DNA of 64,000 bases from Mobula birostris (Eukaryota): NCBI RefSeq assembly GCF_030028105.1, contig NC_092374.1:178460057-178524056 (forward strand). Direction: 5' to 3'. The position numbers were made by a program, and so were the translations under genes. Of this stretch, positions 1-47,200 are shown piece by piece (the first letter of the stretch is position 1; each line of letters opens with the position of its first letter). Under the pieces are notes generated by a model, which worked only from the letters and a program-made list of their open reading frames with translations, made no database searches and had not been told where the DNA came from.

Positions 1-2210
1 TATATTTTATGCCCTGATTAATAAATCCTGTAGGCTTTCTTTACCACCCTGTCTATCACTTTGAAAGAGCTGATCAAGTAGCTCCATTCTTCTCTTACAC
101 GCCTCTGAACGTTTCTTTCTTCAAAAAACATGTCCCATGTTCTTGCTGAAAGTTATTATTTACAAGGTTACAGTATCTTCAGATTTTCTCTTGTTTGTGT
201 TCAGTCGTAAGAAGCAATTATGAGTTATGGGCCAAAGAAACATAATAGACGCTCAAGGAAAGAAACAACTGAGAAGTGATTCGGCCTATGGGTCAAGACC
301 TTCCTGGCTGAGAAATGACTGATATTCAGAGAAGTCATAGACCCTTACCGAACAAAAACAGGCCCATCTGCACAACTGGTCTATGCCAACCAAGATTCCT
401 AACATGGCCCATATACTACCAAACATTTCCTGTCTATCTACTGGTTCCAGTGATTTTTTTTTGTTTAAAATGTTGTTAATGTAGCTGCCAAAACCATTTT
501 CTCTTGCATCTCCTTCCCTGTGCTGACAACTTCTGCTTGAGAATGTTGGCCCTCCGGTTTCTATTATATTTTTCACTAATCACCTTAAACCTTTGTCCTA
601 AAGTTCCTGATGCCCAAATCCTGGAAAAGAGATTGTGCGTTCATCCTCTCTATGCTCTTTATGATTTTATACGTTATTCTATATATCTCAACCTCTTACA
701 TTCAAGGGAAAATAATGGCAAGCTATGCTACTTCCCCTTCTAATTCAAGTGTACCTTTCTTGGCAACATCCTTGAGAATATTTTGTACACCTTTTCCAGT
801 TTAATGACTTCCTTCCTTTGTCAATATGCATAAGATCACCCCATTCTCCTCAGCTCCAGTGAATAAGACATCGCCCGCACCATACATGCTTTCTTCTTCC
901 CCCATCTTCTGCTGAGCAGAAGGTAAGGAAGCCTGAAAGCACACACTGATGATCAAGGACAGCTTCTATTTTGCTGTTATAACAGTATTGTAGAGTTCCA
1001 TAGTACGGCACATTTAACCTTTGATGTCACGATCAACCGTATTGTGGCCCTTGCTCCTTACTGTGTGCCTGCTCTCTACTTCCTCTGTAACTGTTACAAG
1101 TTGCTTTGCATTCTGTTATTTTTGCCCCTTGTATTATCTCAATGTGCAATTGTAATGCAATTATCTGTGGATGGCATGCAGTACAAAGATTTTTCAGTGT
1201 ACCTTGGTACATGTGACAACAATTTAAAATATTACCAATTTACCAATCTTTACTTGGTGAGTAGGAGCCGGGGAGCCTCGTGGTGCAGGTCCTTTGCTGG
1301 GGCTGATGGTGACACTTACGATGATGATTAAAGTGGTGTAGAGGAGCAGCAAGGAGAGAGTCAAGACTTTAGTGCAGGTGGGTAAACACGCAGGTCCTTT
1401 CACTAATCCTGCTTGCCGTCACAGTATTGCTCAACCAATCTCTTCTCGTTTTCCTTTTGCAGGTGGGTGTTTGGCCCAAATCTCAAGCTCAGCTCTGAAC
1501 ACAAGCTGGATCCTCTGCCTGGTTTTGTGATTAATGGTTCAACACTTAAGCAAGCTTAGTGTTGGCTCCAGTGCGGGAAATGCTTAGCTGAATCTTCTGC
1601 CACCTTACAGCTCGTCTGTTTTGCAATGTTATAACTTTTTCTTACATCTCACTCAGCGATCAGGTTTCAGTGTTGTGGTGTGTTGAAGTTTCAACTTCTC
1701 ATTCGTAAAGCCCTACTTGACCTGAATAGCTCTTCCCAACCCTAACGCCAATGCAATACTGTATATCAGACCATTGGTGTGAGGAACTACTGCCAAGGCA
1801 AGTTAGTGGGATAAAGCAGTGGAAGATTTACTGGGCATTTGGAAAGACCTGAATGGAAGAGTGAATTCCTGTTGTGAACTCTGGATACCTAAGAAGAATT
1901 CTTCCCTTAATATGAGATTGGGAGGGTCCAACATTTTCTTTAAAATAGGAACAGAAACCCCTGTATATTGGTGCAATTTGGGTTGATGTAGAGTTAAAAA
2001 TTAATCTGAGGTTCATAGAGTGGTGTAAATATGCCCACTATCCCTGCTGGCGGTTTGGACAGATCTGTGTTCTTTCCTCTGGAGTGTTGGAGGCATGGTA
2101 AGCCTGATGGGCATTTATATAATCCTCAGCAGCACCAGACAGAGGGTAGTCAGTCTTTTTCCCAGCCTAGAAATGTCCAATGTTAGAGAGCATCACTTTA
2201 GTTTAAAGGA
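1..2210 (+). repeat. Copy 1 of an inverted segmental duplication (partner ~15560-18290, minus)
   Basis: Colinear similarity by eye through a CR1 piece, unique intron sequence, antisense CR1, sense LINE tail, tail exon, mini-intron, 3' UTR and a further CR1 piece. Confidence 0.85.
1265..1341 (+). CDS. Last coding exon of a plus-strand paralog ('gene A'; upstream exons outside the window): GAGEPRGAGPLLGLMVTLTMMIKVV*
   Basis: Acceptor tggtgagtag| at 1264; 77 nt to TAG (1339-1341), identical in length to gene B exon 5. Donor CAG|GTGGGT at 1378, 85-nt intron to ttttgcag (1462). Flanks align with the gene B flanks. Confidence 0.75.
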
Positions 2211-2589
2211 GTTGTTCTTTTTTAATATGCTAAGTCTGGTAGATGCCTGGAATGCATTACCAGGCGTGATGGTGCAAACAGACATCATACTGGTCATTAA
2301 AAGGCATTTAGACAGACACATGGACCTGTGAGAACGAAGGGATAGGGACCATGCGCAGACAGATACTTAGTTTAATTAGGCATCATGAATAGCACGGTCA
2401 TTATAGGCTGAAGGGCCTATTGCAGTGCTGTAATGTTTTCTGTTCTAAGGTCTAATGCGGTTATTTCCCTGGATCATGTGTACTGTTTGCTATTATGACT
2501 GAAGTGTCAGCCTTTGCTATTGCCTTGTCGATATCACTGGTTGGGTCGAGGAGGACTCTCAGCTTGTTATCTGAAGGCACTATCACACA

Positions 2590-2720
2590 GCAAGTAGAGC
2601 AAAGCCTCTCTACTCCAGTGACACGGGTTCAATCCTGATCTCCAGCATGGTCCGTGTGGAGTTTGCACATTCTTCCTGTGACGGGTCATGGTCTTCTCAT
2701 CCAGAAATATCTTGGTAGAC
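2590..2720 (+). mobile_element. tRNA-derived SINE fragment (V-SINE/HE1-like)
   Basis: B-box-like GGTTCAATCC followed by gtgtggagtttgcacattct...tgtgac; a related antisense piece lies at ~30960-31060. Confidence 0.5.
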
Positions 2721-3489
2721 ATTCAGACATCATGAGGCATGGGATCCATAGAAACCTGTCTGCATGGATACGGAATTGGCTTGCCCAAAGAAGGCAGAGG
2801 GTGGTAGTGGTTGGAACGTATTATGTCTGGAGGGAGATTGAACAGTGGAATGTACAGCATAGGAACAGGCTATTTGACTCATAATTTGTACCAAACCAAT
2901 TAAAAAGCAAATCAAAAACACCCAAACACTAATCCGTCCTACCTACATTGTCCATTTCCCTCCATCCTCCTTATATCCATGTGCCTATCCAAACGTCTCT
3001 TAACTGCCTCTAATGTGTTTGCCTCTACCACCATGCCAGGCATCCACAACTCTCAGTAAAGGAACACCTCTCACGTCCCCCTTGAACCTACCCCATCTCA
3101 CCTTCAATGCATGCCCTCTGGTATTAGACATTTCAACCTTGGGAATGGATACTCTCTGTCCACTCTATATATGCCTCACACAATCATGTAAACCTCAGTC
3201 AGATCTGCCCTCATCCTCTGACGCTCCAGAGAAAGCAACCCAAGTTTATCCAGCATCTCATGTTAGCACACGCCCTTTAAACCAGGCAACACCCTGGTGA
3301 AGCTCTTCTGCACCCTCTCCAAAGTCCCGACATCCTTTATATAATGGGGCTACCAGAACTGTCTGCCATACTCAGGATGTGGCCGAACCAGAGTTTTATA
3401 AAGTTGCAGCATAACCTCCTGATTTTTGAACTCATTGCCTCCACTAATAAGAGCAAACATTCCATTGCCTTCTTAACCAATGTACTGTT

Positions 3490-7339: not shown

Positions 7340-10060
7340 TAGAGTCATGGAGAAGTACAGCATAGAAACAGGCCCTTCAGCCCATCTAGTCCATGCCAAA
7401 ACCATTTAAACTGCCTATTCCAATTGACCTACTCCGGGACCATAGCCCTCCATATCCCTACTCTCCACGTACCTATCCATACTTCTGTTAAGCATTGAAA
7501 TTGAGCTTGCATGAACCACTTGTGCCAGAAGCTCATTCCACACCCTCACAATGCCCTGGGTGAAGAACTTTCTCCTCGTGTTCCTCTTAAACTTCTCACC
7601 TGTCACTCTTAAGCCAGGTGTAGTACCAGCCAACCTCAGTGAAAAAGAAAGCCTGTTTGTATTTACCCTATCTATGCCCCTCATAATTTTGTATACCTCT
7701 ATCAAATCTCCTCTCAGTCTTCTAAATTCTAAAGAATACATTCCTAACATATTTAATCTTTCCTTATATCTCAGGTCCTCTTACCCTCCCCCTCCCCCAT
7801 ACTCTTGTAGATTTTCTCTTTCAACCTTGTTTACATCTTTCCTGATTAAAACTACACACAATGCTCCAAATTAGGCCTCCCCAACATTTCATACAACTTC
7901 AAAATAACATCCCATCTTCTGTACTCAATACTTTGGTTTATGAAGGCCAAAATGTCAAAACCTTCCTTTACAACACCATCTACCTGGAACACCACTTTCC
8001 AAGAATAATGGACCTGTATTCCCAGATCCCTTTTTTTTCTAACACACTTGTCCGTGCCCTACCATTGACTGTGTAAGACCTACCCTGGCTGGCCCAGCCA
8101 AAGTGCAACCCCTCACACTTGTCTGCGCTAAATTGCATCTGCCATTTTTCAGCCCACTTTTCCAGCTGATGCAGATCTGTCTGCAAGCCATGATAACCTT
8201 CCTCACTGTCCACTACACCCCAAGCCTTGGTATCATCCACAAATTTGCTGATCCAGTTAACTACATTATCATCCAGATCATTGATATAGATGACAAACAA
8301 CAAAGGACTCAGCACCGATCCCTGCAGAACACCACTAGTCACAGGCCTCCAGTCAGAGGTGCAATTGTCTACCACTGCTCTCTGGCTTCTCCCACAAAGC
8401 CAATGACTAATCCAATTTACTACCTCATCCTGAATACTGAGCAACTGAATCTACTACACATGAAGCCATGCTAACTATCCTTAATTATTCCATGTCTATC
8501 AAAATACTTGTATATCCAGTCCCTTAGAATACCTTCCAATAAATTTTCCACAACTTATGTCAAACTCACCGACCTATAGTTTCCTTGTTTCTATTTATAG
8601 CCTTTTCTAAACAGCAGAAACTAAACACTGGCTATCCTCCAGTCGTCTGGTACCTCTCCTGTTGTTAAGGAGGTTTAAAATATCTCAGCTAGGACCCTGG
8701 CAAGTTCTGCACTTCCCTCCTATAGGGTCTGAGCGAATATCTTGTAAGACCCTGGGATTATATACACACTGATTTCCCTCAGGGTAACAAACACCTCCTC
8801 CTCTATAACCTGCAAAGGGTCTGTGAAGTTGATGCTGCTTTGCCTCACTTCTATTGACTCTGTGTCTGTCTTCCGAGTAAATACAGATGCAAAGAATGTA
8901 TTGAAGATCTCCCTCATCTGTTTCAGCTCCACACATGGATTACTATTCTGGTCTTCCAGAGGACCAATGTTGTCCCTTGCAATCCTTTTGCTCTTAACAT
9001 ATCTATAGAATCCTTCGGGATTCTCCTTCACCTTCTCTGCTTGAGCAACTTCATGTCTTCTTTTAGCCTTCCCGATTTTTTTCTTGAGTGTTCTCTTGCA
9101 CTTCTTATACTCCATAAGCACCTCATTTGTTCCTCCCTGCCTGTGCCTGCTAGACACCTCCTTTTTCTCTTAACCAGGGCCTCAATATTTCTTGAAAACC
9201 AAGGTTCCCTGCACCTGTTATCTTTACCATTTATATGACAAGTACATACAAGCTTTGTACTCTCAAAGTTTGTTTTTGAAGGCCTCTCACTTTCCAAGTA
9301 CACCTTTGCCAGAAAACGGCAATTCACAATCCACACTTACCAGATTCTTTCTTATACCACCAAAATTAGCCTTTCTCCAATTTAGAATCTCAGCCCGTGC
9401 ACTAGACCTTTCTTTTTGTATATTTACCTTGAAAATAATGGCATTATGGGCATTGGATGCAAAATGTTGCCCTATACAAACTTATGTCACCTGCCCTGTA
9501 TCATTTCCTAACAGCAGATCCAGTATCTATAAGACCGTAAGACACAGGAGCAGAATTCGGCCATCTGGTCCATCAAGTCTTTTCTGACATTCAATCATGG
9601 TTGATTATTTTTTCTTCTCCTCCTCAACCCCAGTTCATGGCTTTCTCCCTGTAACCTTTGATGCCATGTCCAATCAACATCCTATCAATCTCTGCCTTAA
9701 GTACACCCAATGACCCGGCCTCCACAGCAGCATGTGGCAACAAATTCCACAAATTCACCACCCTTTGAGGGGAATGGCCACAGGGGTGCTCTGCTCTAAC
9801 TGCCTATTTCCATTTCTACTAACAGTCACCCAGCTATTCACCTGCAATTTCAGGGTAACTACTTCCCTGTAACTTTGATCAGTTATGTCCTCACTCTCCC
9901 GTACAAGCCAAAGGTCATCCAGTTGCTGCTCCAGATCCCTAACATGGTCTTCAAGGAGCTGCAGGCAGATGCATTTCATGCAGATGTAGATCTCCAGGAG
10001 ATTCTGGGTCTCCCAGTTCTCCAACATCTGGCACGAAGAGCGCATCACAGCTATTTAAAT
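7340..10060 (-). mobile_element. Degenerate CR1 LINE (ORF1 remnant, ORF2 RT fragments, 3' tail)
   Basis: Fragments SGVLQGSVLSPLLFVIYINDLD...ISKFVDDTK (7980-8444), YSLEFRRLRGDLIEVYKIM (7415-7750), ORF1-like LQLLEDHVRDLEQQLDDL (9755-10048). Confidence 0.88.
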
Positions 10061-16735: not shown

Positions 16736-16933
16736 TTGCTGAGGTAAACCTGTTTGAAGCTGCACCCTGTGTTCAGAACTGTGCTTGAGTTAGAGCCAAA
16801 TGCTGATCTGCAAAGGAGAAAAGAGAGGAGATTGAATGTACAGTCTAATACTGTCACAGCAAGCAGGTTTAACAAAGGCATCTGTACGTTTACCCACCTC
16901 CAGTGACGCCTTGGTTCTCTCCTTGCTGCACCT

Positions 16934-17010: not shown

Positions 17011-20000
17011 CTGTTCACCAAGTAAAGATCGGTAAATGTATAAATTATTTTATTATTGTCACCAGTTACCAGGTACAGTGGAAATACATGTTTTGCATTC
17101 CATCCATACAGAGCATTACATCAGGATATTAAGGTTGTACAAGGGAAAACAATAACAGGATGCAGAGTAATGTATTACTTTTATAGAGGATATGTGGTGC
17201 TAGCTGGCACTAGGATGCAAGACCATTAAAAGTTAGATTGTGAGGTCAGATGCCTATCTTACTATGTTTGGGTCCACTCAATTTTCTCACAGGAGAAAGA
17301 CAGAAGTGTTCATTGATCATAGCAGTACATTCTGTCAGGCTTTTGTATCTGTGCCTGATGGGAGCTGGGAGAAGCGGGGGTGGGTGAGGGGTGGGTGCCG
17401 GGGAGGGTAGTCCTGGGTGGGTAGTATCTTATATATTGGAGGATAGGAGAATGGAAGGTGTTTTGAGGAAGGAAGGATGTCATTAGGATGGAAAGGATGC
17501 AGAGGAGATTCACAAGGATGGTGCCAGGAATGGAATGCTTGAGAAATAAGGAGAGACAAGATAGGCTGGATTTTTTTCCCTGGAGTGTAGGGGGCTGAGC
17601 TATAGAGAGAAGTATATAAAATTTTGAGGGGCATAGAGAGAGTGCACAATAATTTTTCAGGGCTCCTGATGGTATAGGTTTAAGTTAAGAGAGAAAAGAT
17701 ATAACAGGAACCTGAGTGGCAACATGATGGTCAATTTATGGGTGCCAGAAAAAGTGGTTGAGGCAGACAAGTTAGCATCTTTTAAAAGGTACATCCACCA
17801 GTACATGGGTCTAAAGGGTTTAGGGAGATATGGGCCAGGATAAATGGGACTTCTTTGAATGGAAATCTTGATTGACAAAGGCGTGTTGGACTGAAGGGTC
17901 TATTTCTCTGCTGCAGAATTCTACGAATCTATGACACTCAAACACCCGACAGCCAGGCAGTGACCACTTGACAGTCAGGTCTTCCCCACAGTCCCAATTG
18001 CTTCTTAGTTGTTCTTTCTGTTGAGTTCTTACTATATTTCTTTGACCAACTGCTCAACTGCTTCTGTAACATCTGGTGAGCAGAAGGAACAGATTTAATT
18101 CGAGTGATAAAAGAGCACAGTATATAATAACTTCCAAAATGGAAATGGGATATGTTCTTGGAATTAAGAAATTTTCAGAGGTGTGTGAGAAGGAGTGGGG
18201 CTACTTGAGCAAGTCATTCAAAGTAGAGGACAAGGTGGTGAAGATAGCCTACAGGATGCTGGATTTCATTGATCAGGGCATAGAATTCAAGAGAAGGGAA
18301 CTTATGGTGCAGCTTTATGGTGGAGATTCTTGATTAGGTCTTTCAAAGAGGTAAATAGGGTGGTGAAGGAAGTGTATGAGATACCAATTATCAGTGCATA
18401 GAATACAAGGGCATGGGAATTATGGTACAGCTTTATAAAACATCGGTGAGGCTACATTCTGAGTATTGTTTACAGTTCTGGTCACCAGAGCAGAGGAGAG
18501 ATGTGATTGCATTGGACAGAGTGCAGAGGAGATTCACCGGAATGTGGCTCAGATGGAATGGGAAGAGAGAATAGATACACTGGTTTTGTTTTCTTTAGAT
18601 GGGAGGAGACTGCTGGTGGACCTGATGGAGTTATGCAGAATTATTAGGGGTGTAGATAGAAAATACATAGAAAATGTTGGAAGAATTTTTTAAAATATAT
18701 GTTATTTCTGTTTTTGCACTATTTTAAAATCTGTTCAATATACATATATATAATTACTGTAGTTGATTTACTTACTTGTTTTATATTTTTTCTATATTAT
18801 CATGCATTGCATTGTTCTGCTGCTGCTAAGTTAACAATTCTCACAACAGATGCCAGCAACAATAAACCTGATTCTGATTCTGAAGAATGCTACAGGTTTT
18901 ACTTGCTGCAGTTTATGCTTCCACTTCATGTGTTTGCTTGAACAGTAGTAAACCCTTCCCCATAGTAAAGGTGCCTATAACTCGAGGTAGGTTTAAGATA
19001 ATGACTAAGAGGTTTATAGGGAATCTACAGAAGCATACTTTCACCAAGGGGGTGTTGGAGTTGGGAATGGACTGCCTGAGGAGATAGTGGAGGCAGAAAC
19101 CGTCATAATTTTCAAGACGTATCTAGATGAGCAGTTGAATCATCAAGTTAAAGAAGGGGACGGGCCAAGTGTTTATGAGAACTAGAGGGTTTGCATGAAT
19201 CGGATTTGCATGAATTAGGTAGACTGAAGAGCCTCCTTCTCTGCTGCATGAGTCCATGAACCACCACAGGCAGAATGAAGCAAATTCTGTACCGTACAAT
19301 GACCTACCTCCCTTCACCATCAGGGCCTTTGGCAGGCTGCTGTGCTCGACATGACAAGTATAGATGTTCGGGTCATTGCCCTGCAGCTCAGTGACTAGTT
19401 CCATCCAGTATGTATCATTGTAGTTTGGTAGCACAGTCATGTTGTAGCCCTCAGAGACAACCTGCCCATTCTTCAGCCAAGTGGCATTGATAGCTCGGGG
19501 GTAGAAGGGAGTGATGATGCACGAGAGACTCTCGCCTTCAATAGCTGTTGGCCTCCTTGTCAACACCTGAACCTCTGGAGCAACTGGGGAAGGATCAAAA
19601 ATTATGTCACCACCTCAACACAGGCTGATGTTACCTTACTGTTACAGACTGAAGTTACAGTGTTCAATGTTGGGATTACTCTCACATCCTTCACTGCCTC
19701 AGAATGTGATCTGCCTCACTATTACACTCACCATCTAATCTGAAATCAGCCTCCCCAGCCCAAGCTCATGCAGACTACAGACAGAGATTACGTTCATTCA
19801 TCGGGCAGGTCCAGATCAAGGTCACAAGCACTATTCCCAATCCAGCTGTCGTGCAATATCCCAAATTCAGATCATCCTCAAACTGCAAGATGGAGAATGC
19901 CCTCAGCACAGCAGCGGTGATCAGAAGGTCCCTCACTGCCCCAGACCGGGAGATCAGTCAATGTCTCCATTTGGGAGCGCCCTCACTCAAAGATTCAAAG

Positions 20001-23000: not shown

Positions 23001-26000
23001 TAAACATAATGACAAATCAAAAGATAAAAAAGAGAAAAGTAAGGGTGGAGTAAAGAAAAGACAAGTGCAAAAGAGAAAAAGATTACAAGATTTTAAAAGC
23101 ACAATGAGTGAAATGGCACTTTATCTGAATGCCCGTAGTATTCAAAATAAGGTCAGTGAACTTTCGGCACTAATCACTACAAAGGGGTATGATTTCATGG
23201 GCATTACAGAATTGTGGTTGCAGGGTGGAGAGGATCGGGAAGTGAATATCCAAGGATATCAGGTAATATGGAAGGATAGACAGGAATGTAAGGGAGGTGG
23301 GTTAGCGGTCTTAGTTAAGGATGAGATCAGGGTGATTGTGAAAGACGATGTAAGATCTAATGAGCAGAATTTTGAATCCATCTGGGTAGAGATTAGGAAT
23401 AGAAAAGGGAAAAAAATCACTGGTGGAAGTTGTCTATCGACCACTGAATTATAACATTATGGTGGCACAGGCAATAAACAGACAAATATCTGTGGCATGT
23501 GAGAATGGAACAGCGGTTATCGTGGGGGACTTTAACTTGGGTATAGATTGGGTGAATCAAGTTGGTGAAGGCAGTCTTAAGGAGGATGTGATAGAATGCA
23601 TCCATGATGGCTTTCTTGAACAACATGTCACTAAACCTACAAATCTTAGATCCGGTCCTGTGCAATGATCAGGTAAAATTAGTGATCTTGTAGTTAGGGA
23701 TCCTCTTGGAAAGAGTGATCACAGTGTGATTGAGTTTCTCGTACAAATGGAGGGTGCAATAGTTCGATAGAAAACTAGTGTATTACTGTATGCCTAAACA
23801 GTGTAGACTACAATGGGATAAGGGAGGATTTGGCTTGTGTAGACTGGGAACACAGGCTATATGGTGGGACGGTTGAGGAACAGTGGAAGACTTTAAAAGA
23901 GATTTTTCACGGTGTTCAACAGAAGTATCTTCTAGTTAAAAGTGGGGAGCAAGTAAGTTAGCAAGGGTGGGAAATGAAAGAAAGCATCAAACTAAAAGCT
24001 CGTTTGTACAAATTTGCCAAGAGCAGTGGGAAAATGCAAGATTGAGAAAACTTTAAAAAGCAACATAGAACCACTAAGTGAGCAGTGAAGGAAGGGAAGA
24101 TAGACTATGAAAATAAACTAGCACAAAATATAAAAGCAGATCATAAAAGTTGTTATAATTATATAAAGCAGAAAAGGGTGGCTTAAGTGAACATTGGTCC
24201 CTTGGAAGACGAGAAGGGGAATTAATATTGGGGAATGAGGAAATGGCAGAGGCTTTAGATCTACGTTGTGTCGGTCTTCACAGTGGAGGTGGCGGGCACG
24301 TCTAACATGCCAAAGACAGATGTTATGGATGCAATGGGAGGCAAGAACCTGATACAATAGCTATCACTAAAGAGGTAGTGCTGAGCAAACGTGTGGGCCG
24401 GAAGATAGCTAAGTCCCAGGGTACTGAAAGAAATGGCAGAAGTTATAGTGAAGGCTTTGGTGATAATTTACCAAAATAGAACAATAGAGTTGGGGCTAAT
24501 GTATTAGCATGGATAGAGGATTGGTTGACTAATAGAAAGAAGAGAGTTGGGATGCCTGGGTGTTTCTCTGGTTGGCAGTCAGTGGTGAGTGGTGTGCCAT
24601 TGGAGTCTGTGCTGGGCCTGCAACTGTTTACGATATACATTAACGATCTGGAAGAAGGGGGCTGAGTGTAGAGTATCTAAGTTTGTGTAAGGTATGGAAG
24701 CATCTGGAATCTTGTCAATAAGGTCTATGCAGGAACTCTTGACTCCTGAGAACTGCTGAATTGCATGTATTTTAAGGTGTAAAAGACCATGCTTGTGCTC
24801 ACTTTAGCAGAGTCTTTTAGTGGGCTCTCCATGGTCATGTAAGTAAGTAATTAAACTGAATACTGGGGTCTGTGTCCTTGTTTAATCAGCAATAGTAAAT
24901 TTCTGTGACACTCAGAGTAGAGGGGCATCCTTTTAAAAAGGAGATCAGGAAATATTTCTTGAGCCAGAGAGCAGTACATCTGTGGAATTTGTTGTTACAG
25001 CCAACTTGGCAGCTGTGGAGGCCACATCTTTACTATATTTAAAGCAGAGATTGATAGATTCTTTATAGTCACGACATGAAGGGATACAGGGAGAAGGCAG
25101 GACATTGGAGCTGTAAGGGATAATGGACCAGCATGATGAAATGGTGGAGCAGACTCGATGGGCCAAATGGCCCCATTCTGCTTCTGTATCTTATGGTTTT
25201 ATCAAGTCTAGATGTACTCAGTTTAGTTCAGTGCCTTGCCACTAGCCAAATGCAGGCCGCAGATTGTCTTCGCTGAAACGCCCAGTGCGCACTGATGCAC
25301 CCTGATCAAACCACTTAGAAACAGCAAAAAAAGGGTAACCAGAATCCAGAAATACATGAACCCTAAAGTCCCCCAGAAAGAGTCACAATCACGAGCCTCA
25401 CCGATCAATCCCTGCAATGTGGAACCCAAGCCTCCTGCACTTTCCTCCAACAGCAGCTAGTAAAAGGGAGAGGAATACCAGCCAAACGCGGCAGATGGCG
25501 CCAAATACCAGCCTGGCCTCCGCACTTGGCCTCGTCCACTTCAGCCTTGCTCAATACCCCAGCCAGAGAGAAGCAATGGAGCCAATCATGGGCTCACAGT
25601 CCACCTCCAGGTCTGCAGGCCGTACACTCCAATCAACTCACTGTTTCAAATTAGGAGATCCCTCATTACTACAGATTGGGAAACCCTAACCATTTTGTTT
25701 TGTGAGCTCCCTCTCTTTCCCGTATGAGGAGATCCCTCTGCATCTCTGATTGGAAGCTTCCTTACTGTCCAGATCAGGAGATTCCTCTCTGTCCCAGATT
25801 GGGAACACCATCAATTTGTTAGATCATCAAATCCTTCAGTATCCTGAATCATAACAGCCCACACCATCTCGGTCTCAGAGCCCCATAATCGTCTCAGACT
25901 GAGGTATCCTTTATGTTGCTGAATTGGGAGTTCCCTCTCCATCACAGGATGTTCCACTTGCCTTGCCTTTCCAATGCTTCTCTTCCAAGCTGAACAACCC

Positions 26001-29000
26001 TTTGCAAATACCAAGTGCAGTTACTCTTCAATGCAGTCACGTCAGTGAAACTGAGTTGGCTCAATTGATCATTGAACATTGCTAGGAAACCGGTGCCATT
26101 GCATTTCAATGTGTTCAAATCACAGCTGATCTCTCCGATATCCGGGACATTGATTTTTAGAATCGCGTTGACCGTATCTCCAGATTGTGTGCAGCCCCAG
26201 AGTGCCTGTATGTAGCTGAAGCCTGTAAATTACCAACAGATTAATTAACATTAATGGCTGAAGCTTCCAATACTAGATAATGGTCTGGTAAATACGTAAA
26301 TGCTATGTGACTAAGAGGTGCACAAAGTAGTGGGTCACGGTCAGCGACTGTGTACAGTTAAGGCCGAGAGCATGGGGTGAAGTGTCCTATATAGAACATT
26401 TGTCAGTGTGTGGCACAGATCACAGGGTCTGGTGGAATCAGTAATCAATGTGAGCAACTGTCTACACGGCAAGGTGGGAGGGGAAAGTTTAAAGAGATTC
26501 AATTTGTCATTAACGAATGGCAATGTTTCCCAATGTGCAGTGAAAAGCATTCGGATTGGTTACATCACAGCCGGTAGGTAAACTCCAAAGCTCTGAAAGA
26601 CAAAAGGCTGCGGGGGTGCTGGGCTCAACCAGGCCCATCACAGGCACAGCTCTCCCCATCGTTGAGGACATCTGCAGAAGGCAATGTCCCAGGAAGACAA
26701 CATCCATCATCAGGAGCCACACCCTCCCTATCATCCAGGACATACTCTCTTCTTGATGCTACCACTAGGAAGGAGGGACAGAGGCCAAAGGACCAACACC
26801 TCAGGCTCCAAAAAGAGCTCCATGCCCAATACCACCAGGTTCTTTAACCAACCAGAAAAGCCTTAACGAGACCCTAGATTATATTCTTCTCTCTCTTAAT
26901 TTTGCACAAATATTGTTACATTTATTTTGTTGTATGCCTTTGCACATGTGCGGGTTGTACATATTTATTTAAAATTGACTCCATGCTAACATGTCCTGTA
27001 ATATACCATGCTGCTGCTGTAAGACAGTAATTTGATGGCATTTGTACCCTGTGTATGTCAGCCTATGATCAGAAATAAACTTGAGCTTGAACTTATGCGG
27101 AGTGCACAGTACAGAGATCACGTTGAAACACTGTGCAGTGCACAGTACTCTACATACAAAGCAGGGGGCACATTGAAGGACTCTGTCGACATGTGGGTCG
27201 GAGCAGGGGCTCACAGTGAGAGACTGCGCTGTACAGTCTGCGCTGAACCACGTCCACTGCAGAGAGTTACGGCGGAGAATTGTGAAAGCAACGTGTTTGT
27301 ATTCAGTGTCAATAAGCACAGAGTGTGCAACACAGCAGTTCTGGTCACTCTGTGACGGTGAGGCTTTGGAGTAGGTGCAGAAGATGCTTACCAGATGCTG
27401 CCTGGATTGGACAGCATGTGCAATAACAAGTGATTTGACCAATTTGGGCTGTTTTCTCTGTTTCAAAGTTGACAGCTGGTATAATTTTTCCCTCAGTTGA
27501 AATGTCTAATGCAAGAGGGCATGGAAAAGGGGATATGTTCAATGGAGATGTGCAGGGTAAGACTATTACAGAATGGTGGGTTCCTAAATTGTGCTTCCAG
27601 GGGTTGTGGTAGTAGCAGATACAAAGAGGGTGTTCAAGAAGCTTAGGCGAGCAGGACATGGACATTGTGTAGGCAGAAAAGATGAGATTAGTTTGGTATT
27701 TGATTATTAATACAATTAGTTCAGCAGAACATTTTGGGCCAAAGGGCCTGTTCCTGTGTTGTAGCATTCTAGGTCTAATGCATGGAGTCCCCGCACCGAA
27801 TTAGATCTGGAAAGCATCATTGTGGCAGGTGACTAGATAAGAACCATGGACGTCTTAGTTCCAACCATCCTAGACTGAAGCATCCCCAAGTCTGGAGTTG
27901 GGGAGTAGGCTTAGGATTAGGGTTTGAGCCAGGCAAAGCCTGTATGGACAGTGGGTTTGATTTTCACTGTTTCTCTGAAGAGATCATTGGGGAATGAGGA
28001 CTGGATAATCAGTTTATTTTGAAGGGTTAGAACTTACCCAGATGATTAGGATGGAATTCTTGTAATTGGAGTTAAGGAAGGTAGAGAGCAGAATGGAGAT
28101 TTGAGAGATTTGAAAGAGTGAAGGACTTTAAACTTGATACAGCATAATCAGATCTAATAGAAGATCAAGATATTGGCAATATGCAAGTCACTGTGATACT
28201 CAAAGGGTAGTGGGGGTCAAAGACACTCACTAATCGATGAGGGTAATTGCTTCAGATATGTCGAGAGGAGCTCATGAAGCCGATCGGCTATTTCTTTCTG
28301 TTCTTTCCAGTAGTCGGTCGATAAGCCATCTGCGATCCACTGGTACTTGACTTCTACTTCACGGAGTGTGCTGTCGTAGTAGTCTGTCTGCAAGTCATTG
28401 AGCATCCCAATCCTGAAGGAAACTGGTATTTCATGAATGCTGATGGGTTGGAAGTAGTGATATGTCAAGCTGTATGCGCCTGAGTAAAAGGACAGAGAGA
28501 GTGTCAGAAAACAACAAAGGATGCTCACAATTTATAAGGCAGAAATTGGGAGTTTGATGACATACTCGCCACTTGAATGGATTAATACACATCCAAACAG
28601 ACATCCTACTGGATCAGGCAGCACTCCCACCCCTCTTTATTAGCTCCCCAAACACGACCAACCAACACTATGAAAACTTGCTTCACTGCTCTGGCCATTT
28701 ACAAAATCCTAAGCAGATACTCACCGAAGCCAATCTAACAGAACGACCCAAACCCCAGCACAAAGGAGGTCAAGGGCAGCAGGGAAACAGGAGCCCCAAC
28801 TCCCACTATAGGGTTGCTTCTAAGTCAGAGGCAACCATAATGGAATATGAGTCCACCATGATAGAGCGGAAGCCAAGTTTCAAGGAGAAGCAGAAGACAA
28901 TTCCGGGGCACCAGTGTAGAAATTCTCATCATCGCAACAAAGGTGACAGAGAAAGAGCACAGAAAAGAGGTAGTGGAGTCCCACAAGAGGCAGAGTGGGA

Positions 29001-35000: not shown

Positions 35001-36051
35001 GTATTTTCTGTAAGCGCCAGTGCAGACACAGAACACTCTCCCATAGTCTGCCATGTGTAAACATACTGACCAACCACCCCAACACCAGAGCTTTGACGAA
35101 CTCGCCACTCATGTCCACTGGCAACGGCCTCCACTTCCCGCTGCATCATTTGGCATGAGCGGTGTTAACCTGGCGATTTTACAAAACCTCCCAGAAGTCC
35201 TTATACATAACATGCATCAATGTTCTGCCAGTCTATTACCACAGCAATCACCAAAACTTAGAGCCAACTCTTGATGCACTTTGTAAATAGAAAGAAAAAG
35301 TTCTGACAATAGTCAACAGGCCAGGCAGTATCTGGAGAAAAGAGGAACTGTTAATGTCTCAAGTTAAAGACGGAAGGTTCCGATAGCATGCAAGGACAGA
35401 GAAACAGGGCTAATGTTTAATGACCAAGGTGGAAATCTTGCAACAGTTCGGGTAGCATCTGTTGGGAGACAAAGAATGAATGTTTCAGATTCGGGAGCCT
35501 GAGTCAGAACTTGGAATGAGAGAAATCAAGTTAGTTTTTGTTAGCAGAGAAGTCATTCACACATAAGGCACAGAAAGAGGCCACTCGGACAGCTATGTGT
35601 GTGCAGACCCTAGAGGAATGGGTAGAACAGGGGTATTTCTTTGGTATTGTGAAACAGACTGACGTAACGTGGCAGTTAAGGGATAGTTAAACTCAGATTA
35701 ATTGCTTTAATGTGATGCCTCTGTTAAGACTGTGGGACTTTCCTCTTTGGGAACTGGCGATAGACCCCAAACTACCCACCGCTGAAACATATTCAAGGAT
35801 CATTTTGCCCCGAGTTTATCGACTCCAGAAATTTCACAGGAGTGAAATCAGAACACAGGAGTGCGATGAGTTCGTCCTGCCGTCTAATGGAGCAACTGCC
35901 AGGAACTCCAAAAGATTTAAAGGTGAATTTCCCGACACAACCCCCGACCATCGCCGTCACATACCCTCGCCTCACCTGCCTGTTGTCCCGCGACAGAGCA
36001 GAGAGATAACGCGGTGACAAGGAGCGATACCGGTCCGGTCCAGCTCTCCAT
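16934..36051 (-). CDS. Complete spliced nonclassical MHC class I-like heavy-chain gene ('gene B'), 5 coding exons, 939 nt, 312 aa
   Basis: Exons 36051-35976 (76 nt), 28479-28231 (249), 26222-25962 (261), 19583-19308 (276), 17010-16934 (77). All introns are phase 1 with AG acceptors; the joined CDS is 939 nt with no internal stop. Domain order leader-alpha1-alpha2-IgC1-hydrophobic tail is that of class I. Confidence 0.88.
19308..19583 (-). CDS. Gene B exon 4: alpha3 Ig C1-set domain (92 aa)
   Basis: VAPEVQV...LSCIITPFYPRAINATWLKNG...YTCHVEHSSL shows the IgC1 C-x4-FYP, W and YxCxVxH motifs. Acceptor ttccccag| at 19584, donor G|GTAGGT at 19307; 276 nt. Confidence 0.93.
20240..22590 (+). mobile_element. 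Degenerate CR1 LINE including ORF1 with an SGNH-esterase-like domain (gene B intron 3)
   Basis: VLIGNSIGRRTETRFCG...VCCLP...VHLGTNE (20645-20875), endonuclease fragment WVELRN...IYRP...VGNFN (21235-21522), RT remnants. Confidence 0.85.
22600..24690 (+). mobile_element. Second degenerate CR1 LINE (ORF1 end plus ORF2 endonuclease/RT)
   Basis: ALYLNARSIQNKVSEL...GITELWL...GGGLAVLVK...IWVEIRN (within 22930-23454); VVYRP...GDFN (23423-23668). Confidence 0.85.
25962..26222 (-). CDS. Gene B exon 3: divergent MHC class I alpha2 domain (87 aa), not represented in the ORF track
   Basis: Hand translation SFSYIQALWGCTQSGDTVNAILKINVPDIGEISCDLNTLKCNGTGFLAMFNDQLSQLSFTDVTALKSNCTWYLQRVVQLGREALERQ has Q96, WGC (C101), C164 and the typical ...LER end. 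Acceptor aatttacag| at 26223, donor AG|GCAAGT at 25961. Confidence 0.85.
28231..28479 (-). CDS. Gene B exon 2: MHC class I alpha1 domain (83 aa)
   Basis: GAYSLTYHY...GMLNDLQTDYYDS...QWIADGLSTDYWKEQ... matches the class I alpha1 pattern. Acceptor ttttactcag| at 28480, donor A|GTGAGT at 28230. Overlaps ORF 28217..28528. Confidence 0.9.
31550..34560 (-). mobile_element. Degenerate CR1 LINE in gene B intron 1, carrying a nested LINE 3' piece (~32940-33275) and a solo LTR
   Basis: RT remnants (GLKVGKSPEPDGL, FFSYIKNKREVRVDIRPLE); CR1 sequence resumes on both sides of each insertion. Confidence 0.78.
33446..34293 (+). mobile_element. Solo LTR (848 bp), antisense to gene B in intron 1
   Basis: Termini TGTGACA...GTAACA, perfect 4-bp TSD ATGT (33442-33445 / 34294-34297), TATA-like gataaaaggg, AATAAA near 34204; CpG-rich. 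Confidence 0.88.
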
Positions 36052-36470
36052 TGCGACAACTCCTCGCATCGACTGAACCCTGATCGTTAGTCAGTGAAGT
36101 GCTGAGGGTGGAATTAGATTCACAGACGCGGCTTGGGGCAAACAGGGTAAACAGGTGCAGCCAGTAGCTGAAACTCCTCCTACAGAAATGACTGTGTGGG
36201 CAACGGAGTGTCGGCTGGTCGCGGGAGGGAGAGGAGCCAAACCACTTCCTGTTGTGTTGCAACAGATCCAGCGAGAGGAGATTTCAGGAACCTCCGAACA
36301 GCCCGAGGGAAGCTGCTCCGCACAAAACTTCTCCAATCACTAGGTAAAACAAAACTTCCAGAAGAGCTGGACGGGTCAGGCGGCAGATGTGAAGGAAAAT
36401 GCAGTGTCAACCCAAAACGTCCACTGTCCAGATCGCCTCCGCAGCTGCGGCCTGACCCGCTGATTCATAG
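35640..36470 (-). promoter_or_regulatory. CpG-rich promoter / first-intron region of gene B with candidate factor sites
   Basis: Non-repetitive and locally CpG-rich around the leader exon. GGGACTTTCC (kappaB consensus) 35734-35743; TGACGTAA (CRE-like) 35660-35667; ACAGGAAGTG (ETS, minus) 36252-36243; CCAATCA 36333-36339. Motif matches only. Confidence 0.5.
35976..36051 (-). CDS. Gene B exon 1: signal peptide MESWTGPVSLLVTALSLCSVAGQQA
   Basis: ATG at 36051-36049, hydrophobic core, phase-1 donor G|GTGAGG at 35975; lies in a non-repetitive CpG-rich stretch. Confidence 0.82.
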
Positions 36471-41231: not shown

Positions 41232-44200
41232 TAAAACCCCTTTGTACTGGGCACCTCTGGAAATATACCCGTTAACCCCCTCACTGGACTCCACAGCAAG
41301 AAACCCACCTTTCTCAGGCTTCATACATCTAGAGCATATACAACTTTGCCCCGCCAAATCCGTGGTTAGGATGTCTCGCCATCCCATAGCCTGGTTTATG
41401 TGAATGCTGGGTGATTCACTGCACCTGGCAATCACCCGTCGGCAAGAATTAACAGATCATACACCGCATACATTATAAAGAAGTATATTTAAGAATGTTA
41501 ACTTCAGCAACCAGTTATTAAAGGAAAGAAAGAAGAAAACGAAGAAGGCGCATTATACTTAAACAGTTGCATCTTCACAGTGGAGCTCACATCTTCTAGA
41601 AGCCATTGATATACACACTGCATCTTCCAAATTTCACTTGAAATCCATCTTGAACAAACAGGCTCCCCCACTGGAGTGTTTGTCCTTCCTCCTCGAAGCA
41701 CCTTGTGCAACGGGGACAGCATCTTCAGCCATCTTCCCACCTTCTCCCAGTTCCCGCCAACAAAGACCTCAAACCATACCAGTGTCCCTCACAAAAACTC
41801 TCCACCCAGCGTTCTCTAGAACCTTCTCTGAATTCCTCCGTCCTAAATGACTGACACCACGTTCCAAATTTGAACAACAAAGCCCTTATCTCAGCTCAAA
41901 CCCAAACAGACTGAAAGTAGAACAGAACTGCGAAAATGAAATACCTATGGCGTAGTGGTAAAAATCTTAACCAGAGCTTTATTCTCCCACTCCCAAAAAG
42001 TAAAAAAAGTAGTCATGTCCTCATGACTTTGAAACTTATCAACCCATCCTTAATAGTTTTCAAAGGAATTTCCTGATGTCAGGACCTCCAATCCATTTGT
42101 GAGTGGTAGTGACATATCTCACTAGGGGGATAGACGCAACACTCTGTTACCCCAGTGCGACATAGGCCAACCTATCCTGACTCTTTGAGACCTCCTTATC
42201 CAATCTTCAGCTCCTCAAGTTTCATCCACCCCTTGTGACCCTTCCTGTCTGCTAAAGGGTACCTCTCACTTGTGTCTTCCGGTGGCTCAAGCCTCCCTGC
42301 TTCATGACCGAATATCCTCAGCTTCTGCTGGTGCTAACTGGCAAGACCTCTCTCAAAAAAGGAGTGTCCTCGGTTTCTCCTGAAGTGTGGCAAGTCAGCC
42401 TTGTCAATAGAAAACACATCTTCGGGTCCCAATATTTTGTCAATTAATCTTCTTTTCCATTCCTCAAACATTTTGGCAAGTTTGGGGTTCCTGTCACTCT
42501 AGCTATTCCACCAGGGTGTAAGGTGACAGGTTTAGACTGGGTACACCACATAGTTCCTCATTTCTGCTCAACATCCTGCTTAGGAGAAACTTGCACTTTC
42601 TCAACAGCAGCTCTAAACACAAGGTGAATGGACAAGGTTTTCAAAAAGTTCTCTCCATTTCTCTCCTTGCATTCTCCCGGGAGCCTTCTCACAATGCAGT
42701 ATTTGTTCCCACAAAAATGGAAGCTCTTACCTTTTTCAACTGGCTCTAGGCAGACCGACACTGGTGTGTCAATGGTTACTCAGTCACTCCAACATCTGCT
42801 TCCAAAAACTGCAGCTTCAGCAACAAGCAACCATCAGTACTAGGCCCCGAATCTCAAGGGCAGAGAGTGGCGTCAATGGTAAGTGCATCAAATATCAGTT
42901 GTACAAGGATCTATAAAGCAAAGTAACTTGAGAACCTGTGTCAAGTATGGCTCTGGCATAAACACCTTCAATCCATATGGTTACAGCAGAACTTGGCCCC
43001 TAAAACTTCAGGAATAGTGTTTGGTACTTAAGTATTTCCCTTGTTACACTGATGGGCATGTATCCTCTCTGAAACGCCAGCCCATTCCTTTACTGGGTCA
43101 CTCCGTAGTTTTACCTCTTTCCTTCTCTGCTTGATTAACCACTGATTTACTTTCTGAAGATTTTCCTCTCCTGCACACTCCTGCTTGAATTCTGTCCGCA
43201 ATCCTAACAGAGAATATCGGTCACTCTGGACAAGGGTCCCGCTCAGTAGCAGCCCTCGCCTTGGTACGTCCCACCAGAGGGTCCGGTTCATTTCAGCCTT
43301 GTCATTCTTGGTAGCAGCACCAATCGATATCATCTGAAATGTCTCGGCCCTCCGATCTTTCTCAACTTCTTACAAAGCCCTGCTTATGTAGCATTATTTT
43401 AAACTCCCTATACTGACTATCTTGCTGGAGAACATGCAGACACTGGTGAGTAAAATCGATGATCTTAGAGCTAAGGTGCTGAATCAGAGGGACATTAGGA
43501 CTGGGTGTGTCCTTTGTTTCACGGAATCCTAGTTAACCCCTTCTGTACTAGATTCAGCGATTCAGATCGATGGGTTTACTATACACCATGAGGATAGATC
43601 TAAGGAGTCTCTCAAAAGCAGAAGTGGAGGAGTATGCCTCATGATCAACCCTTCTTGGTGCACAAATATCAGTGCTGTCCCAATTCTGCTCACCAGACCT
43701 GGAATATCTAGCAGTTAAGTGCTGTCCTTTTTATCTACCAAGGGAGTTCTCTGGGGTCATTTTGGTAGCAGTTTACATTCCACCTCAGGCCAATGTCAAT
43801 CAGGCTTTAGATGATCTGAGCAATGGGATCAACATGCACGAAACAGTGCACCTTCATGCCTTCAAAATTGTTTTGGGAGATTTTAACCAGGCCAGTCTGA
43901 ACAGATCACTAAGCATTTACCATCAACAGATCACTTGCAATACCAGAGAAAACAACACACTGGACCATACCTACAACACCATCAAGAATGCCTACCATGC
44001 TATTCCATGCCCTCACTTTGGGAAGTCTGATCACCTGGCTGTACTTCTACTCCCTGAGTATAGGCAGAGACTGAAGACTGAGGACTGAGAAGGTATGGAC
44101 AAGGGAAGCACAGGAGCGCCTACAGGACTGCTTTTGAGTTGGTAGACTGGACTATATTCATGGATTCATCTTCAAATTTGGATTATGCTGCAGTTGTTAC

Positions 44201-47200
44201 CGATTTCATTAAAACCTGTGTGGATGACTGTGTGCCTGCAAAGACTTGCTGTACGTTCCCAAACCAAAAGCCATGGATGAACCAGGAGTTACATCATCTG
44301 CTGAAGGCTAGATCTGTGGCATTCTTCATCAAGTTATGGTATTGTTGCACTGTTGTAACTATATGTTATAATTATGTGGTTTTCTCAGTTTTTCAGTCTT
44401 GGTCTGTCCTATGTTTTGTGATATCACACCGGAGAAAATATTTTATCATTTCTTAATGCATGCATTACTAAATGACAATAAAAGAGGTCTGCATAATCTA
44501 ATAGTCTTCATAATCTAATCTAATCTAATCAAGTCTGGCAATCCAGGCCTGTACCAGAAAACCAGATTTGCAGAGGGTTATTTCAAAGGTGAAGGGACAA
44601 TTTTGAACGAGGTTGGAGGTGACATCGGATGCACGACAACTCCAGCAGGGTCTGCAAGACGTTACTTCCTACAAAGCAAAACCCAATAGTATGAATGGCA
44701 ACGATGCTTCACTCTCAGATGAACTCAACGCCTTCTATGCCTGATTTGAAAGGTAGAACACAATTACTGCTGTGAAGATCCCCGCTGCACCTGATGACTC
44801 TGTGATCTCCATCTCAGAGCCCGATATTAGGCTGCCTTTAAAGAGAATGAACCCTCACAAGGCGAAAGGTCCCAAAGGAGTACCAGGTAAGGCTCCGAAA
44901 ACCTGTGCCAACCAACTAGCGGGAGTATTCAAAGACATTTTCAACCTCTCACTGCAACGGGCGGAAGTGCCCACTTGCTTCAAAAAGGCAATGATTATAC
45001 CAGTGCCTAAGAAGAATAATGTGGGCTGTCTTAATGACTGTCACTCGGTAGTACTGTACTCACATCGACAGTGATGAAATGCTTTGAGAGGTTGGTCATG
45101 ACTAAACTGAACTCTTGTCTCAGCAAGGACCTGGACCCATTGCAATTTGCCTATCGTCTCAATAGGTCTGCGGCAGACACCATCTCCATGGCTCTCCACA
45201 TGGCTTTAGACCACCTGGACAACACAAACACCTATATCAGGATGCTGTTCACCGAATACACTGTAGCTCATCATTTAATACCATCATTCCCACAACCCTG
45301 ATTGAGAAGTTGTGGAACCTGGGTCTCTGTACCTCCCTCTGCAAATGGATCCTTGACTTCCTAACCGGAAGACCACAATCTGTGCAGATTGGTGATAACA
45401 TCTCCTCGCTGACGATCAACACTGGCGCACCCCAGGGGTGTGTGCTTAGCCCACTGCCCTACTCTCTACATACACATGACGGTGTGGCTAGGCACAGCTC
45501 AAATAGCATCTATAAACTTGCTGATGATACAACCATTGTTGGTAGAATCTCAGGTGGTGATGAGAGGGTGTACAGGAGTGAGATATGTGAACTAATGGAA
45601 TGGTGTCACAGCAACAACCTGGCACTCAACGTCAGTAAGATAAAAGAGCTGATTGTGGACTTCCAAGAAGGGTAAGACGAAGGAACACATACCAATCCTC
45701 ACAGAGGGATCAGAAGTGGGGAGAGTGAGCAAGTTCCTGGGTGTCAAGATCTCTGAGGATCTAACCTGGTCCCAACATATTGATGTAGTTATAAAGAAGG
45801 CAAGACAGCAGCTATACTTCATAAGGAGTTTGAAGAGATTTGGCATGTCAACAGATACACCCAAAAACCTCTATAATTTTACTATGAAGAGCATTCTGAC
45901 AGGCTGCATCACTGTCTGGTATGGGGGGGAGGGGTGTGGGGAGGGACTACTGCACAGGATCGAAAGAAACTGCAGAGGGTTGTAAATCTAGTCAGCTCCA
46001 TCTTGGGTACTAGCCTATACAGTACCCAGGACATCTTTAGGGAGCGGTGTCTCAGAAAGGCAGCATCCATCATTAAGGACTTCCAGCACCCAGGGCATGC
46101 CCTTTTCTCACTGATACCATCAGGTAGGAGATACAGAAGCCTAAAGGCACGCGCTTAGCGATTCAGGAACAGCTTCTTCCCCTCTGCCGTCCGCTTCCTA
46201 AATGGACATTGAACCCTTGCACACTACCTCACTTTTTTTAATGTACAGTATTTCTGTTTTTTGCACATTTAAAAAAAATTATTCAATATACATATACTGT
46301 AATTGATTTACTTGTTTGTTTATTTATTATTGTTACTTTTATTTTTTTTCTCTCTTCTAGATTATGTATTGTATTGAACTGCTGCTGCTGAGTTAAGAAA
46401 TTTCACATCACATGCCGGTGGTAATAAACCTGATTCTGATTCTGATCGGGGGTCGCTTTAGCAACAGAAGTTACTACTAAGGACAGTGCCCTGCTGACGG
46501 AGGCCTCCTGCTCCTCCATTGCATTTTCCTCCTAACTTCACAGCTTTACTTGGTAAAAGATGGAGGAGGGGGCATCTTACGGGTCATTCGAATAAGTAGA
46601 GCAATCATGTCATGTGACAGTGCACCCTTCACAACTTGCTCCATCCTCAAGCAATTTCTCTGAGACAGTTGAATGCTCCTTTTGTGGCACAAACAGTGGA
46701 GTGGATTCTTCAGCCAGAAAATGAAGGCAGATAACTTCTCTCCTTCCTCCTGGAATGTGTGCCTAAGCTTCATCCTAAGATCAGCTGCACTTCCAGCAGT
46801 GCCATACGTATCTTCCCGGGCTTGCAGGTAATTAGCTGACTGGGCTAATGGGTTTTCTGTCTTGGGTACCCTTATGATATCAGCCATGGCCCCTTAATTT
46901 CTCCATCACTCTCAGTTTTTTTCATATTATCTGAGCACTCCAGTATCTGAGCCCAGCCCAAACCCCACATTCTGCTTCCCCATCGGGTGTAGGTTTGGCC
47001 ACAGTGAACACTTCCAGCCTACAATAACTTTAGCTCTCCACAGATAGACTTTTGCATTTATCAACCAGTGATGCAATAGCCAAAATGAGCCCAGAATTTA
47101 AATCAACAGCTAAAGTATTCATTTAGGCCTATTACATCAGATATCCCCTCCCCCTCACCCGCAGAAACAAGAGCAACTTTTCTTTAAAGCCTTCACCCTC

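Follow-up and report, generated by a model that had tools for sequence, protein, structure and literature searches.

Two genes of the manta ray Mobula birostris that resemble class I genes of the major histocompatibility complex (MHC) end at a TAG codon inside the exon that encodes the membrane anchor, and this raises the question of whether the stop is a lesion or a lasting trait of such genes. The two genes, here named gene A and gene B, lie in a stretch of 64,000 nucleotides of contig NC_092374.1 (positions 178,460,057 to 178,524,056, forward strand), which we call the window. A first-pass annotation of this DNA had noticed that both genes share the stop and carry an intron behind it, in the 3′ untranslated region (3′-UTR). 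Judged from the relatives that we compared, the stop is a trait of the whole lineage and not of the two manta paralogs.

Reading the letters directly and comparing the window with itself, we found the coordinates and features first annotated for both tail ends to be correct. In each tail exon, the TAG stands after the same 77 nt and is followed by 36 nt, a GTGGGT donor, and an intron of 85 nt in gene A or 90 nt in gene B (Table 1). Read in the two alternative frames, the gene A tail exon stops sooner in both. The two tail exons are contained in an inverted segmental duplication (4-2185 versus 18286-15561) of 70-73% identity. A further conserved block of the duplication, 4-301 versus 18286-17977, falls in the intron between the α3 and tail exons of both genes; there, translation gave neither a persuasive open frame nor a likeness to the alternative C-terminus of the Narcine isoform. 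An artefact caused by a high-copy repeat was considered and ruled out, as the window holds just two copies of the tail exon, within one inverted duplication.

We aligned contigs of four small public runs (X9, X10, X7, and X3) to positions 900-2700. Three of the runs represent organism B (with a contig at 99% identity or higher) and one represents organism A (95-99%). One contig of each run, in both organisms, joined position 1377 to 1463 and thereby skipped exactly the 85 nt of the GT-AG intron. The raw joint reports of 1372 to 1458 ("cut +5") and 1374 to 1460 ("cut +3") denote this same joint. Depth was zero in all four runs at 1388-1448, the sole bin wholly within the intron. The contigs covered the gene A tail exon from its acceptor (1263; from 1270 in X3) to its donor. 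In the three organism B runs, they carried 28-91 extra letters 5′ of 1263 that are not on the intron, and therefore the gene A tail exon is joined to an upstream exon. At the other end, this same contig in X9 and in X10 reached 2700 and ~225-230 nt more, and the contig ends fit a cleavage ~20-27 nt past the ATTAAA at 2899-2904. No contig showed a joint from a donor upstream of the TAG, and 1377 to 1463 was the only joint of the tail exon. We read the runs as RNA because ~0.1 Gb per run is too little to assemble a multi-gigabase genome at a depth of 11-17 and because the contigs are spliced.

No letter of the TAG was changed in the contigs of the four runs. Close to it, a T>C change at 1310 (which replaces Val by Ala within the hydrophobic end and is the state of the NCBI model P0154) and a synonymous G>A change at 1335 were present in X9 and X7 and absent from X10, and organism A showed G>A at 1333. 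These changes are allelic or species variants and leave the stop unaffected.

A skate transcript (L002) crosses the equivalent junction. It reads ...GATAACAG up to the junction and ATGAACATCC directly behind it, which is the exact junction predicted from the Amblyraja genome. We had first suspected intron retention in L002, for which similarity scores were uninformative; the Amblyraja genome ruled this out by showing that L002 is the spliced form. The mini-intron proposed in the first-pass annotation is thus spliced, in gene A as in the skate.

How far does the stop reach beyond the manta? A full HMMER search with the α3 exon and two word-index searches gave 25 near-full-length relatives from 15 species. 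The batoids were represented by Mobula birostris, M. hypostoma, Hemitrygon, Hypanus, Pristis, Amblyraja, and a skate transcript, and the sharks by Cetorhinus, Carcharodon, Mustelus, Pristiophorus, Heterodontus, Chiloscyllium, and Heptranchias. All 25 members are 309-321 residues long, share the same aligned end, and finish 0-4 residues past an uncharged hydrophobic run of 13-21 residues, so that none has a cytoplasmic tail. The exceptions were predicted or odd isoforms, namely Narcine X2, old ab initio models of Chiloscyllium and Scyliorhinus, and the short P0001, P0003, P0167, and P0170. Among such models, P0169 (Narcine), P0003 (Mobula), and P0001/P0170 (Hemitrygon, Hypanus) lack α2 or α1 and α2 or have a different, hydrophilic C-terminus; they are possibly soluble forms or model artefacts.

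At the genomic level, TAG was the stop in 5/5 tail exons read from four species. The exon remainder behind it measures 36 nt in both Mobula genes, 41 nt in the thorny skate Amblyraja (L004), 42 nt in the bamboo shark Chiloscyllium (L001), and 41 nt in the sevengill shark Heptranchias (L005). It is followed by introns of 85 nt (gene A), 90 nt (gene B), 95 nt, 108 nt, and 123 nt, respectively, each opening with a GT donor (GTGAAC in the sevengill). Since sharks, skates, and rays all have the stop and the 3′-UTR intron, both features date at least to the shark-ray common ancestor. The same aligned position in 25 members and the TAG in all five genomic exons uphold the proposal that the stop was shared by descent and predates the duplication of A and B. 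In the alignment of orthologs from sharks and rays, none of the family members compared had an open codon where the TAG stands, and the suggested path from TAY or TGG to TAG therefore cannot be read from the present sequence.

Which genes are these? Gene B matches the NCBI model P0160 of Mobula birostris (318 aa), at 100% over the leader, α2, α3, and tail and at 98.8% over α1. It is an intact five-exon class I heavy chain with leader, α1, α2, an immunoglobulin (Ig) C1-set α3, and an anchor exon. Its α3 exon ends in phase 1, and thus the frame of the tail exon is the one that runs into the TAG. For gene A, just the tail and last exons fall inside the window; the tail is identical to another Mobula birostris model, P0154, at 24/25 residues, the sole difference being the 1310 T>C variant. 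The top PDB match of the α1, α2, and α3 exons of gene B is 8gm8_A, "MHC class I protein" (E 2.6e-11, 4.2e-12, and 4.6e-24, respectively). The UniRef record of the 265-residue 8GM8 chain names the nurse shark, Ginglymostoma cirratum, and a comparison of the bamboo-shark member with 8GM8 gives E 1.2e-101. In a tree of 19 sequences against three outgroup class I chains, the family forms one clade with 100/100 support. Sharks are sister to batoids in it, and an A-type clade (Mobula A, Hemitrygon, and Hypanus) stands apart from Pristis and the B-type expansions. Mobula birostris has at least five full-length models in this family. CD1-like, MHC-linked class Ib genes of sharks and rays, called UFA/UGA, are mentioned together with a crystal structure in two papers (PMC10751288, PMC12562908).

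Taking these observations together, we consider one combined explanation likely as a whole. Genes A and B form a tail-to-tail, inverted pair of paralogs within the elasmobranch lineage of CD1-like, non-classical MHC class I (class Ib) genes to which PDB 8GM8 belongs. Throughout this lineage, an ancient TAG directly after the short hydrophobic segment of the membrane-anchor exon ends the protein, and the product is a β2-microglobulin-type class I-like chain without a cytoplasmic tail and with an end resembling a glycosylphosphatidylinositol (GPI) signal. The leftover exon (36-42 nt), the short intron, and the last exon survive as a 3′-UTR whose intron is still spliced. The comparisons show this anatomy, the splicing, the stop across the family, and the absence of a conserved frame behind it; GPI anchoring and the two roles that follow are deduced. 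The mRNA would be exempt from nonsense-mediated mRNA decay (NMD). A purine-rich block behind the stop would act at the RNA level, enhancing the splicing of the small exon and intron.

Several points weigh against this explanation. The GPI call is taken from the layout of the sequence only, and a tail-less transmembrane (TM) anchor would look identical there. The A-type copies of Mobula, Hemitrygon, and Hypanus have a Lys three residues from the end. Exemption from NMD is derived solely from a distance rule, and the ~1.46-kb 3′-UTR may also have an influence. The runs are labelled "RNA?", and X10 "probably DNA"; their RNA nature rests on the spliced contigs, the zero intron depth, and the small run size. 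Contigs are blind to rare unspliced or alternative forms. The read-based evidence for splicing covers gene A alone, and the "word shares" of gene B (0.05-0.28) say nothing firm. Finally, the label UFA is unconfirmed for this lineage, and we found no paper tying the sequence or the PDB code to that name.

The nature of the anchor is the part of the explanation with the closest competitor. In every member, judged by eye, a cluster of small residues lies 8-10 positions before the hydrophobic end; it reads GGVG or GAG in rays and G-V-S, G-S-S, or G-G-S in sharks. The C-terminus would thus be laid out as a GPI-attachment signal, with small residues, a spacer of 6-8 residues, and a hydrophobic end of 13-21 residues. 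Mouse Qa-2 (Q7/Q9) offers a precedent: this class Ib molecule has the same layout and is GPI-anchored, and it depends on exon 5 for its anchor (PMC6292030). We found no paper in the literature that deals with GPI-type tails of class I genes in elasmobranchs. On this layout, we lean somewhat towards GPI anchoring of the family members. A minimal, tail-less type I TM anchor is clearly the less probable reading, with perhaps a quarter of our belief. Here, the end of 15-21 residues would stay in the bilayer, perhaps aided by a partner protein or, in A-type copies, by the near-terminal Lys, which all three genera keep. Together with the preceding GAGP, the uncharged run does reach 16-21 residues in most members. 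However, most members have no basic stop-transfer residue after the segment, some runs are just 13-16 residues long, and the GPI-like cluster upstream is found in all of them.

We then considered how the transcripts tolerate an intron behind the stop. A stop that precedes the last junction by less than 50-55 nt lies in a zone that is exempt from NMD (PMC8339359). The first-pass annotation had placed the manta stops in this zone, and the distance of 36 nt from stop to junction in Mobula A and B bears this out; at 41, 42, and 41 nt, Amblyraja, Chiloscyllium, and Heptranchias fall within it as well. With the stop less than 50 nt before the junction, no exon junction complex (EJC) is expected behind the terminating ribosome, and therefore the mRNA is not an expected target of EJC-dependent NMD. 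From the 50-55-nt rule we infer that these mRNAs are exempt, and the assembled spliced transcripts fit such an exemption.

The 17-nt purine block directly behind the stop is better conserved than any other piece of the tail exon. Its identity between lineages is 0.78, with 10/17 columns invariant, compared with 0.56 for the hydrophobic coding part and 0.43 for the middle of the intron. Having stayed similar over such a time, the block would be under selection. It is probably an exonic splicing enhancer for an exon that is small and has a modest donor (GTGGGT, or GTGAAC in the sevengill), a reading that draws on what is generally known of purine-rich exonic splicing enhancers. A stronger proposal is that the 3′-UTR intron and the purine block are not leftovers but a post-transcriptional module, selected since the shark-ray ancestor. 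An EJC deposited 36-42 nt behind the stop, near enough to escape NMD, would then boost or regulate expression, for example through translation, targeting to the endoplasmic reticulum, or a switchable intron retention that alters the handling of the transcript. We regard this proposal as doubtful.

The first-pass annotation had read the 12 codons behind the stop as a recognisable stop-transfer and cytoplasmic fossil, left by a single TGG- or TAY-to-TAG change shortly before the duplication of A and B. There are reasons why such a reading suggests itself. In class I genes, exon 5 normally covers a connecting peptide and a TM segment and then the basic residues of a cytoplasmic start (PMC2189523). 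The outgroup class I chains P0133, P0138, and P0112 have W followed by R or K at the membrane boundary, where TGG to TAG would be one transition, and the layout of exon, short intron, and last exon resembles the class I exon 5/6 boundary. The details behind the stop do not fit it, however. A run of 12 sense codons has a chance of ~0.56 in random sequence, and 5/6 frames of the two 36-nt pieces are open. Between A and B, 8/36 bases differ, 7/8 of them at codon positions 1 or 2; 6/12 codons differ, with six non-synonymous changes and no synonymous one, the reverse of what constraint on a coding frame would leave. Both manta genes lack 5 nt that are found directly after the TAG in the skate, the bamboo shark, and the sevengill shark. 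Given this deletion and piece lengths of 36, 41, 41, and 42 nt, the manta frame (RSSKER...) differs from the frame that is probably ancestral. The basic look of the post-stop reading is due to its purine content, which yields R, K, E, or S in any frame. Moreover, the stop is not recent but at least as old as the shark-ray split. We consider a fossil frame of this recent kind improbable, and by these comparisons the 36-42 nt behind the stop are non-coding.

At a deeper level, the annotation may nonetheless be right: given the class I exon 5 layout and the W-R/K boundary of the outgroups, the exon remainder and the intron are most simply seen as relics of a once longer coding region. The downstream frame is likewise not conserved. 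In the skate (L004, 30525-30530) and the sevengill shark (L005, 33945-33950), the last exon begins with ATGA, and the TAG frame, if read on, meets TGA one codon past the junction. In the manta and the bamboo shark, the same frame runs 5-11 codons further. The ratio of non-synonymous to synonymous substitution rates over the 24 coding codons is about 1 (0.37/0.38); the stretch is too short, with only its hydrophobicity constrained, and we did not use this ratio as evidence. A splice acceptor at the TAG, which would give a soluble form, was also considered and dropped, as the site lacks a pyrimidine tract and the skate does not keep the frame.

That the genes are decaying pseudogenes, or that readthrough or an alternative donor bypasses the stop to give a tailed protein, is highly improbable and was rightly argued against at the outset for pseudogenes: apart from the odd short NCBI isoforms of some relatives (P0003, P0169) we found no support for it, while gene B is an intact 318-aa frame over five exons, the gene A tail is transcribed and spliced with its sole joint at 1377 to 1463, the stop is kept in 25 members, and past the junction the A and B sequences are not conserved in frame. 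We know of no readthrough motif that corresponds to the post-stop context (TAG, then A or T, purine-rich).

Table 1. Exons, stops, and 3′-UTR elements of genes A and B in window coordinates.
Feature	Position	Strand	Remarks
Gene A tail exon	1265-1377 (113 nt)	+	Acceptor AG 1263-1264; direct reading
Gene A tail exon, coding part	1265..1338	+	Starts in phase 1; connecting peptide and hydrophobic C-terminus of 15-17 residues ending ...MMIKVV
Gene A stop TAG	1339-1341	+	Same in contigs of four runs; invariant in the five-sequence alignment
Gene A exon remainder behind stop	1342..1377 (36 nt, 12 codons, RSSKERVKTLVQ)	+	Non-coding 3′-UTR by comparison; the proposed "fossil frame"
Gene A purine-rich block, 17 nt	1342..1358	+	Directly behind the stop; best conserved piece of the tail exon
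Gene A 3′-UTR intron, 85 nt, GT..AG	1378..1462	+	Donor GTGGGT at 1378; spliced out; joint in X9, X10, X7, X3
Gene A last exon, ~1.46 kb 3′-UTR	1463..2925	+	ATTAAA 2899-2904; contigs reach 2700 and ~224-231 nt more
Gene B tail exon	17010-16898 (113 nt)	-	Coding 17010-16937; TAG 16936-16934; P0160 residues 294-318 at 100%
Gene B post-stop piece	16933-16898 (12 open codons, RCSKERTKASLE)	-	Purine block 16933-16917
Gene B 3′-UTR intron, 90 nt	16897..16808	-	Donor GTGGGT at 16897; predicted by homology with gene A
Gene B α3 exon, Ig C1-set	19308..19583	-	Pfam C1-set E 3.2e-14; ends in phase 1
Gene B α2 exon, cysteine-rich	25963..26220 (approximate)	-	tblastn span
Gene B α1 exon	28229..28483 (approximate)	-	tblastn span
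Gene B leader exon	35974..36069	-	tblastn span

Around the two genes, the window is rich in repeats. The segments 1189-1223, 2242-2274, 2613-2645, and 2650-2682 match many unrelated RNA contigs at ~91% with loose ends on both sides, and they look like cores of a short interspersed element (SINE)-like or other interspersed repeat. The SINE-like core at 1189-1223 lies in the intron just 5′ of the gene A tail exon and does not include the exon; the other three lie in the gene A 3′-UTR. Reverse-transcriptase-like open reading frames of the long interspersed element (LINE) or Penelope type occur at 51296-52549 (-), 43645-46155 (+), 7983-8450 (-), 53112-53615 (-), and 56733-57320 (+), one of them with 418 aa. 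Transposon remains make up most of the intergenic space and of the long gene B introns. A lone MHC class I α1-like exon at 62199-62525 (-) (Pfam MHC_I E 1.3e-12) has ~32% identity to the α1 of gene B. No α2 or α3 partner for it was found between 28.5 kb and 62 kb. Possibly it is an orphan exon, or else it belongs to another class Ib lineage with undetected exons.

The closest known system is the elasmobranch CD1-like class Ib lineage itself (8GM8), which two papers mention (PMC10751288, PMC12562908). Our genes are alike in sequence, in their place in the tree, in the α1-α2-α3 order with a cysteine-rich α2, and in MHC linkage. These papers call the lineage single- or low-copy and are silent on the C-terminus and the 3′-UTR, whereas here it is multicopy in rays. 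Transcripts with a 3′-UTR intron in the NMD-exempt zone are alike in having a spliced intron and a stop, here 36-42 nt, upstream of the last junction. In the present lineage, by contrast, this geometry has lasted as long as the crown elasmobranchs themselves, with the exemption being rule-based.

In mouse Qa-2, a stop in exon 5 turns the downstream exons untranslated. Qa-2 (Q7/Q9) is likewise class Ib, and in place of a TM segment and tail it has a short hydrophobic end, given by exon 5, that serves as the GPI signal (PMC6292030). It differs in having an independent and recent origin in the rodent Q region, compared with an age of about the shark-ray split, and its GPI anchor is proven, while that of the elasmobranch chains is predicted.

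The gene family (barely published), an anchor-exon stop giving a lipid-anchored or tail-less class Ib molecule, and the textbook NMD rule are thus already known. Our analysis adds direct evidence for splicing of the 3′-UTR intron, the conservation of this intron and of a stop within the exempt window in sharks, skates, and rays alike, and the conserved purine block together with the case against the fossil frame. It is a real and tidy finding, if only a modestly surprising one. The stop, the 36-42 nt behind it, and the short intron are a clean natural case of a 3′-UTR intron tolerated in the NMD-exempt window, of about the age of the shark-ray split. In genome annotation, such genes should be marked neither as truncated nor as pseudogenes.

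Most CD1 isoforms of mammals have a TM segment and, behind it, a short cytoplasmic tail that carries a tyrosine sorting motif. The lineage of genes A and B differs from CD1 in having no tail whatever. Mammalian CD1, a lipid-binding class I-like molecule, is the functional analogue reported for this lineage (PMC12562908). What appears to be a lesion, a stop in the anchor exon, is a defining and very old trait of the class I-like lineage that has been proposed as the CD1 counterpart of cartilaginous fish. A CD1-like molecule that has no sorting tail and is probably GPI-anchored would take another route to lipid-loading compartments than most mammalian CD1 isoforms, and this different trafficking route would bear on how far the "shark CD1" analogy reaches.

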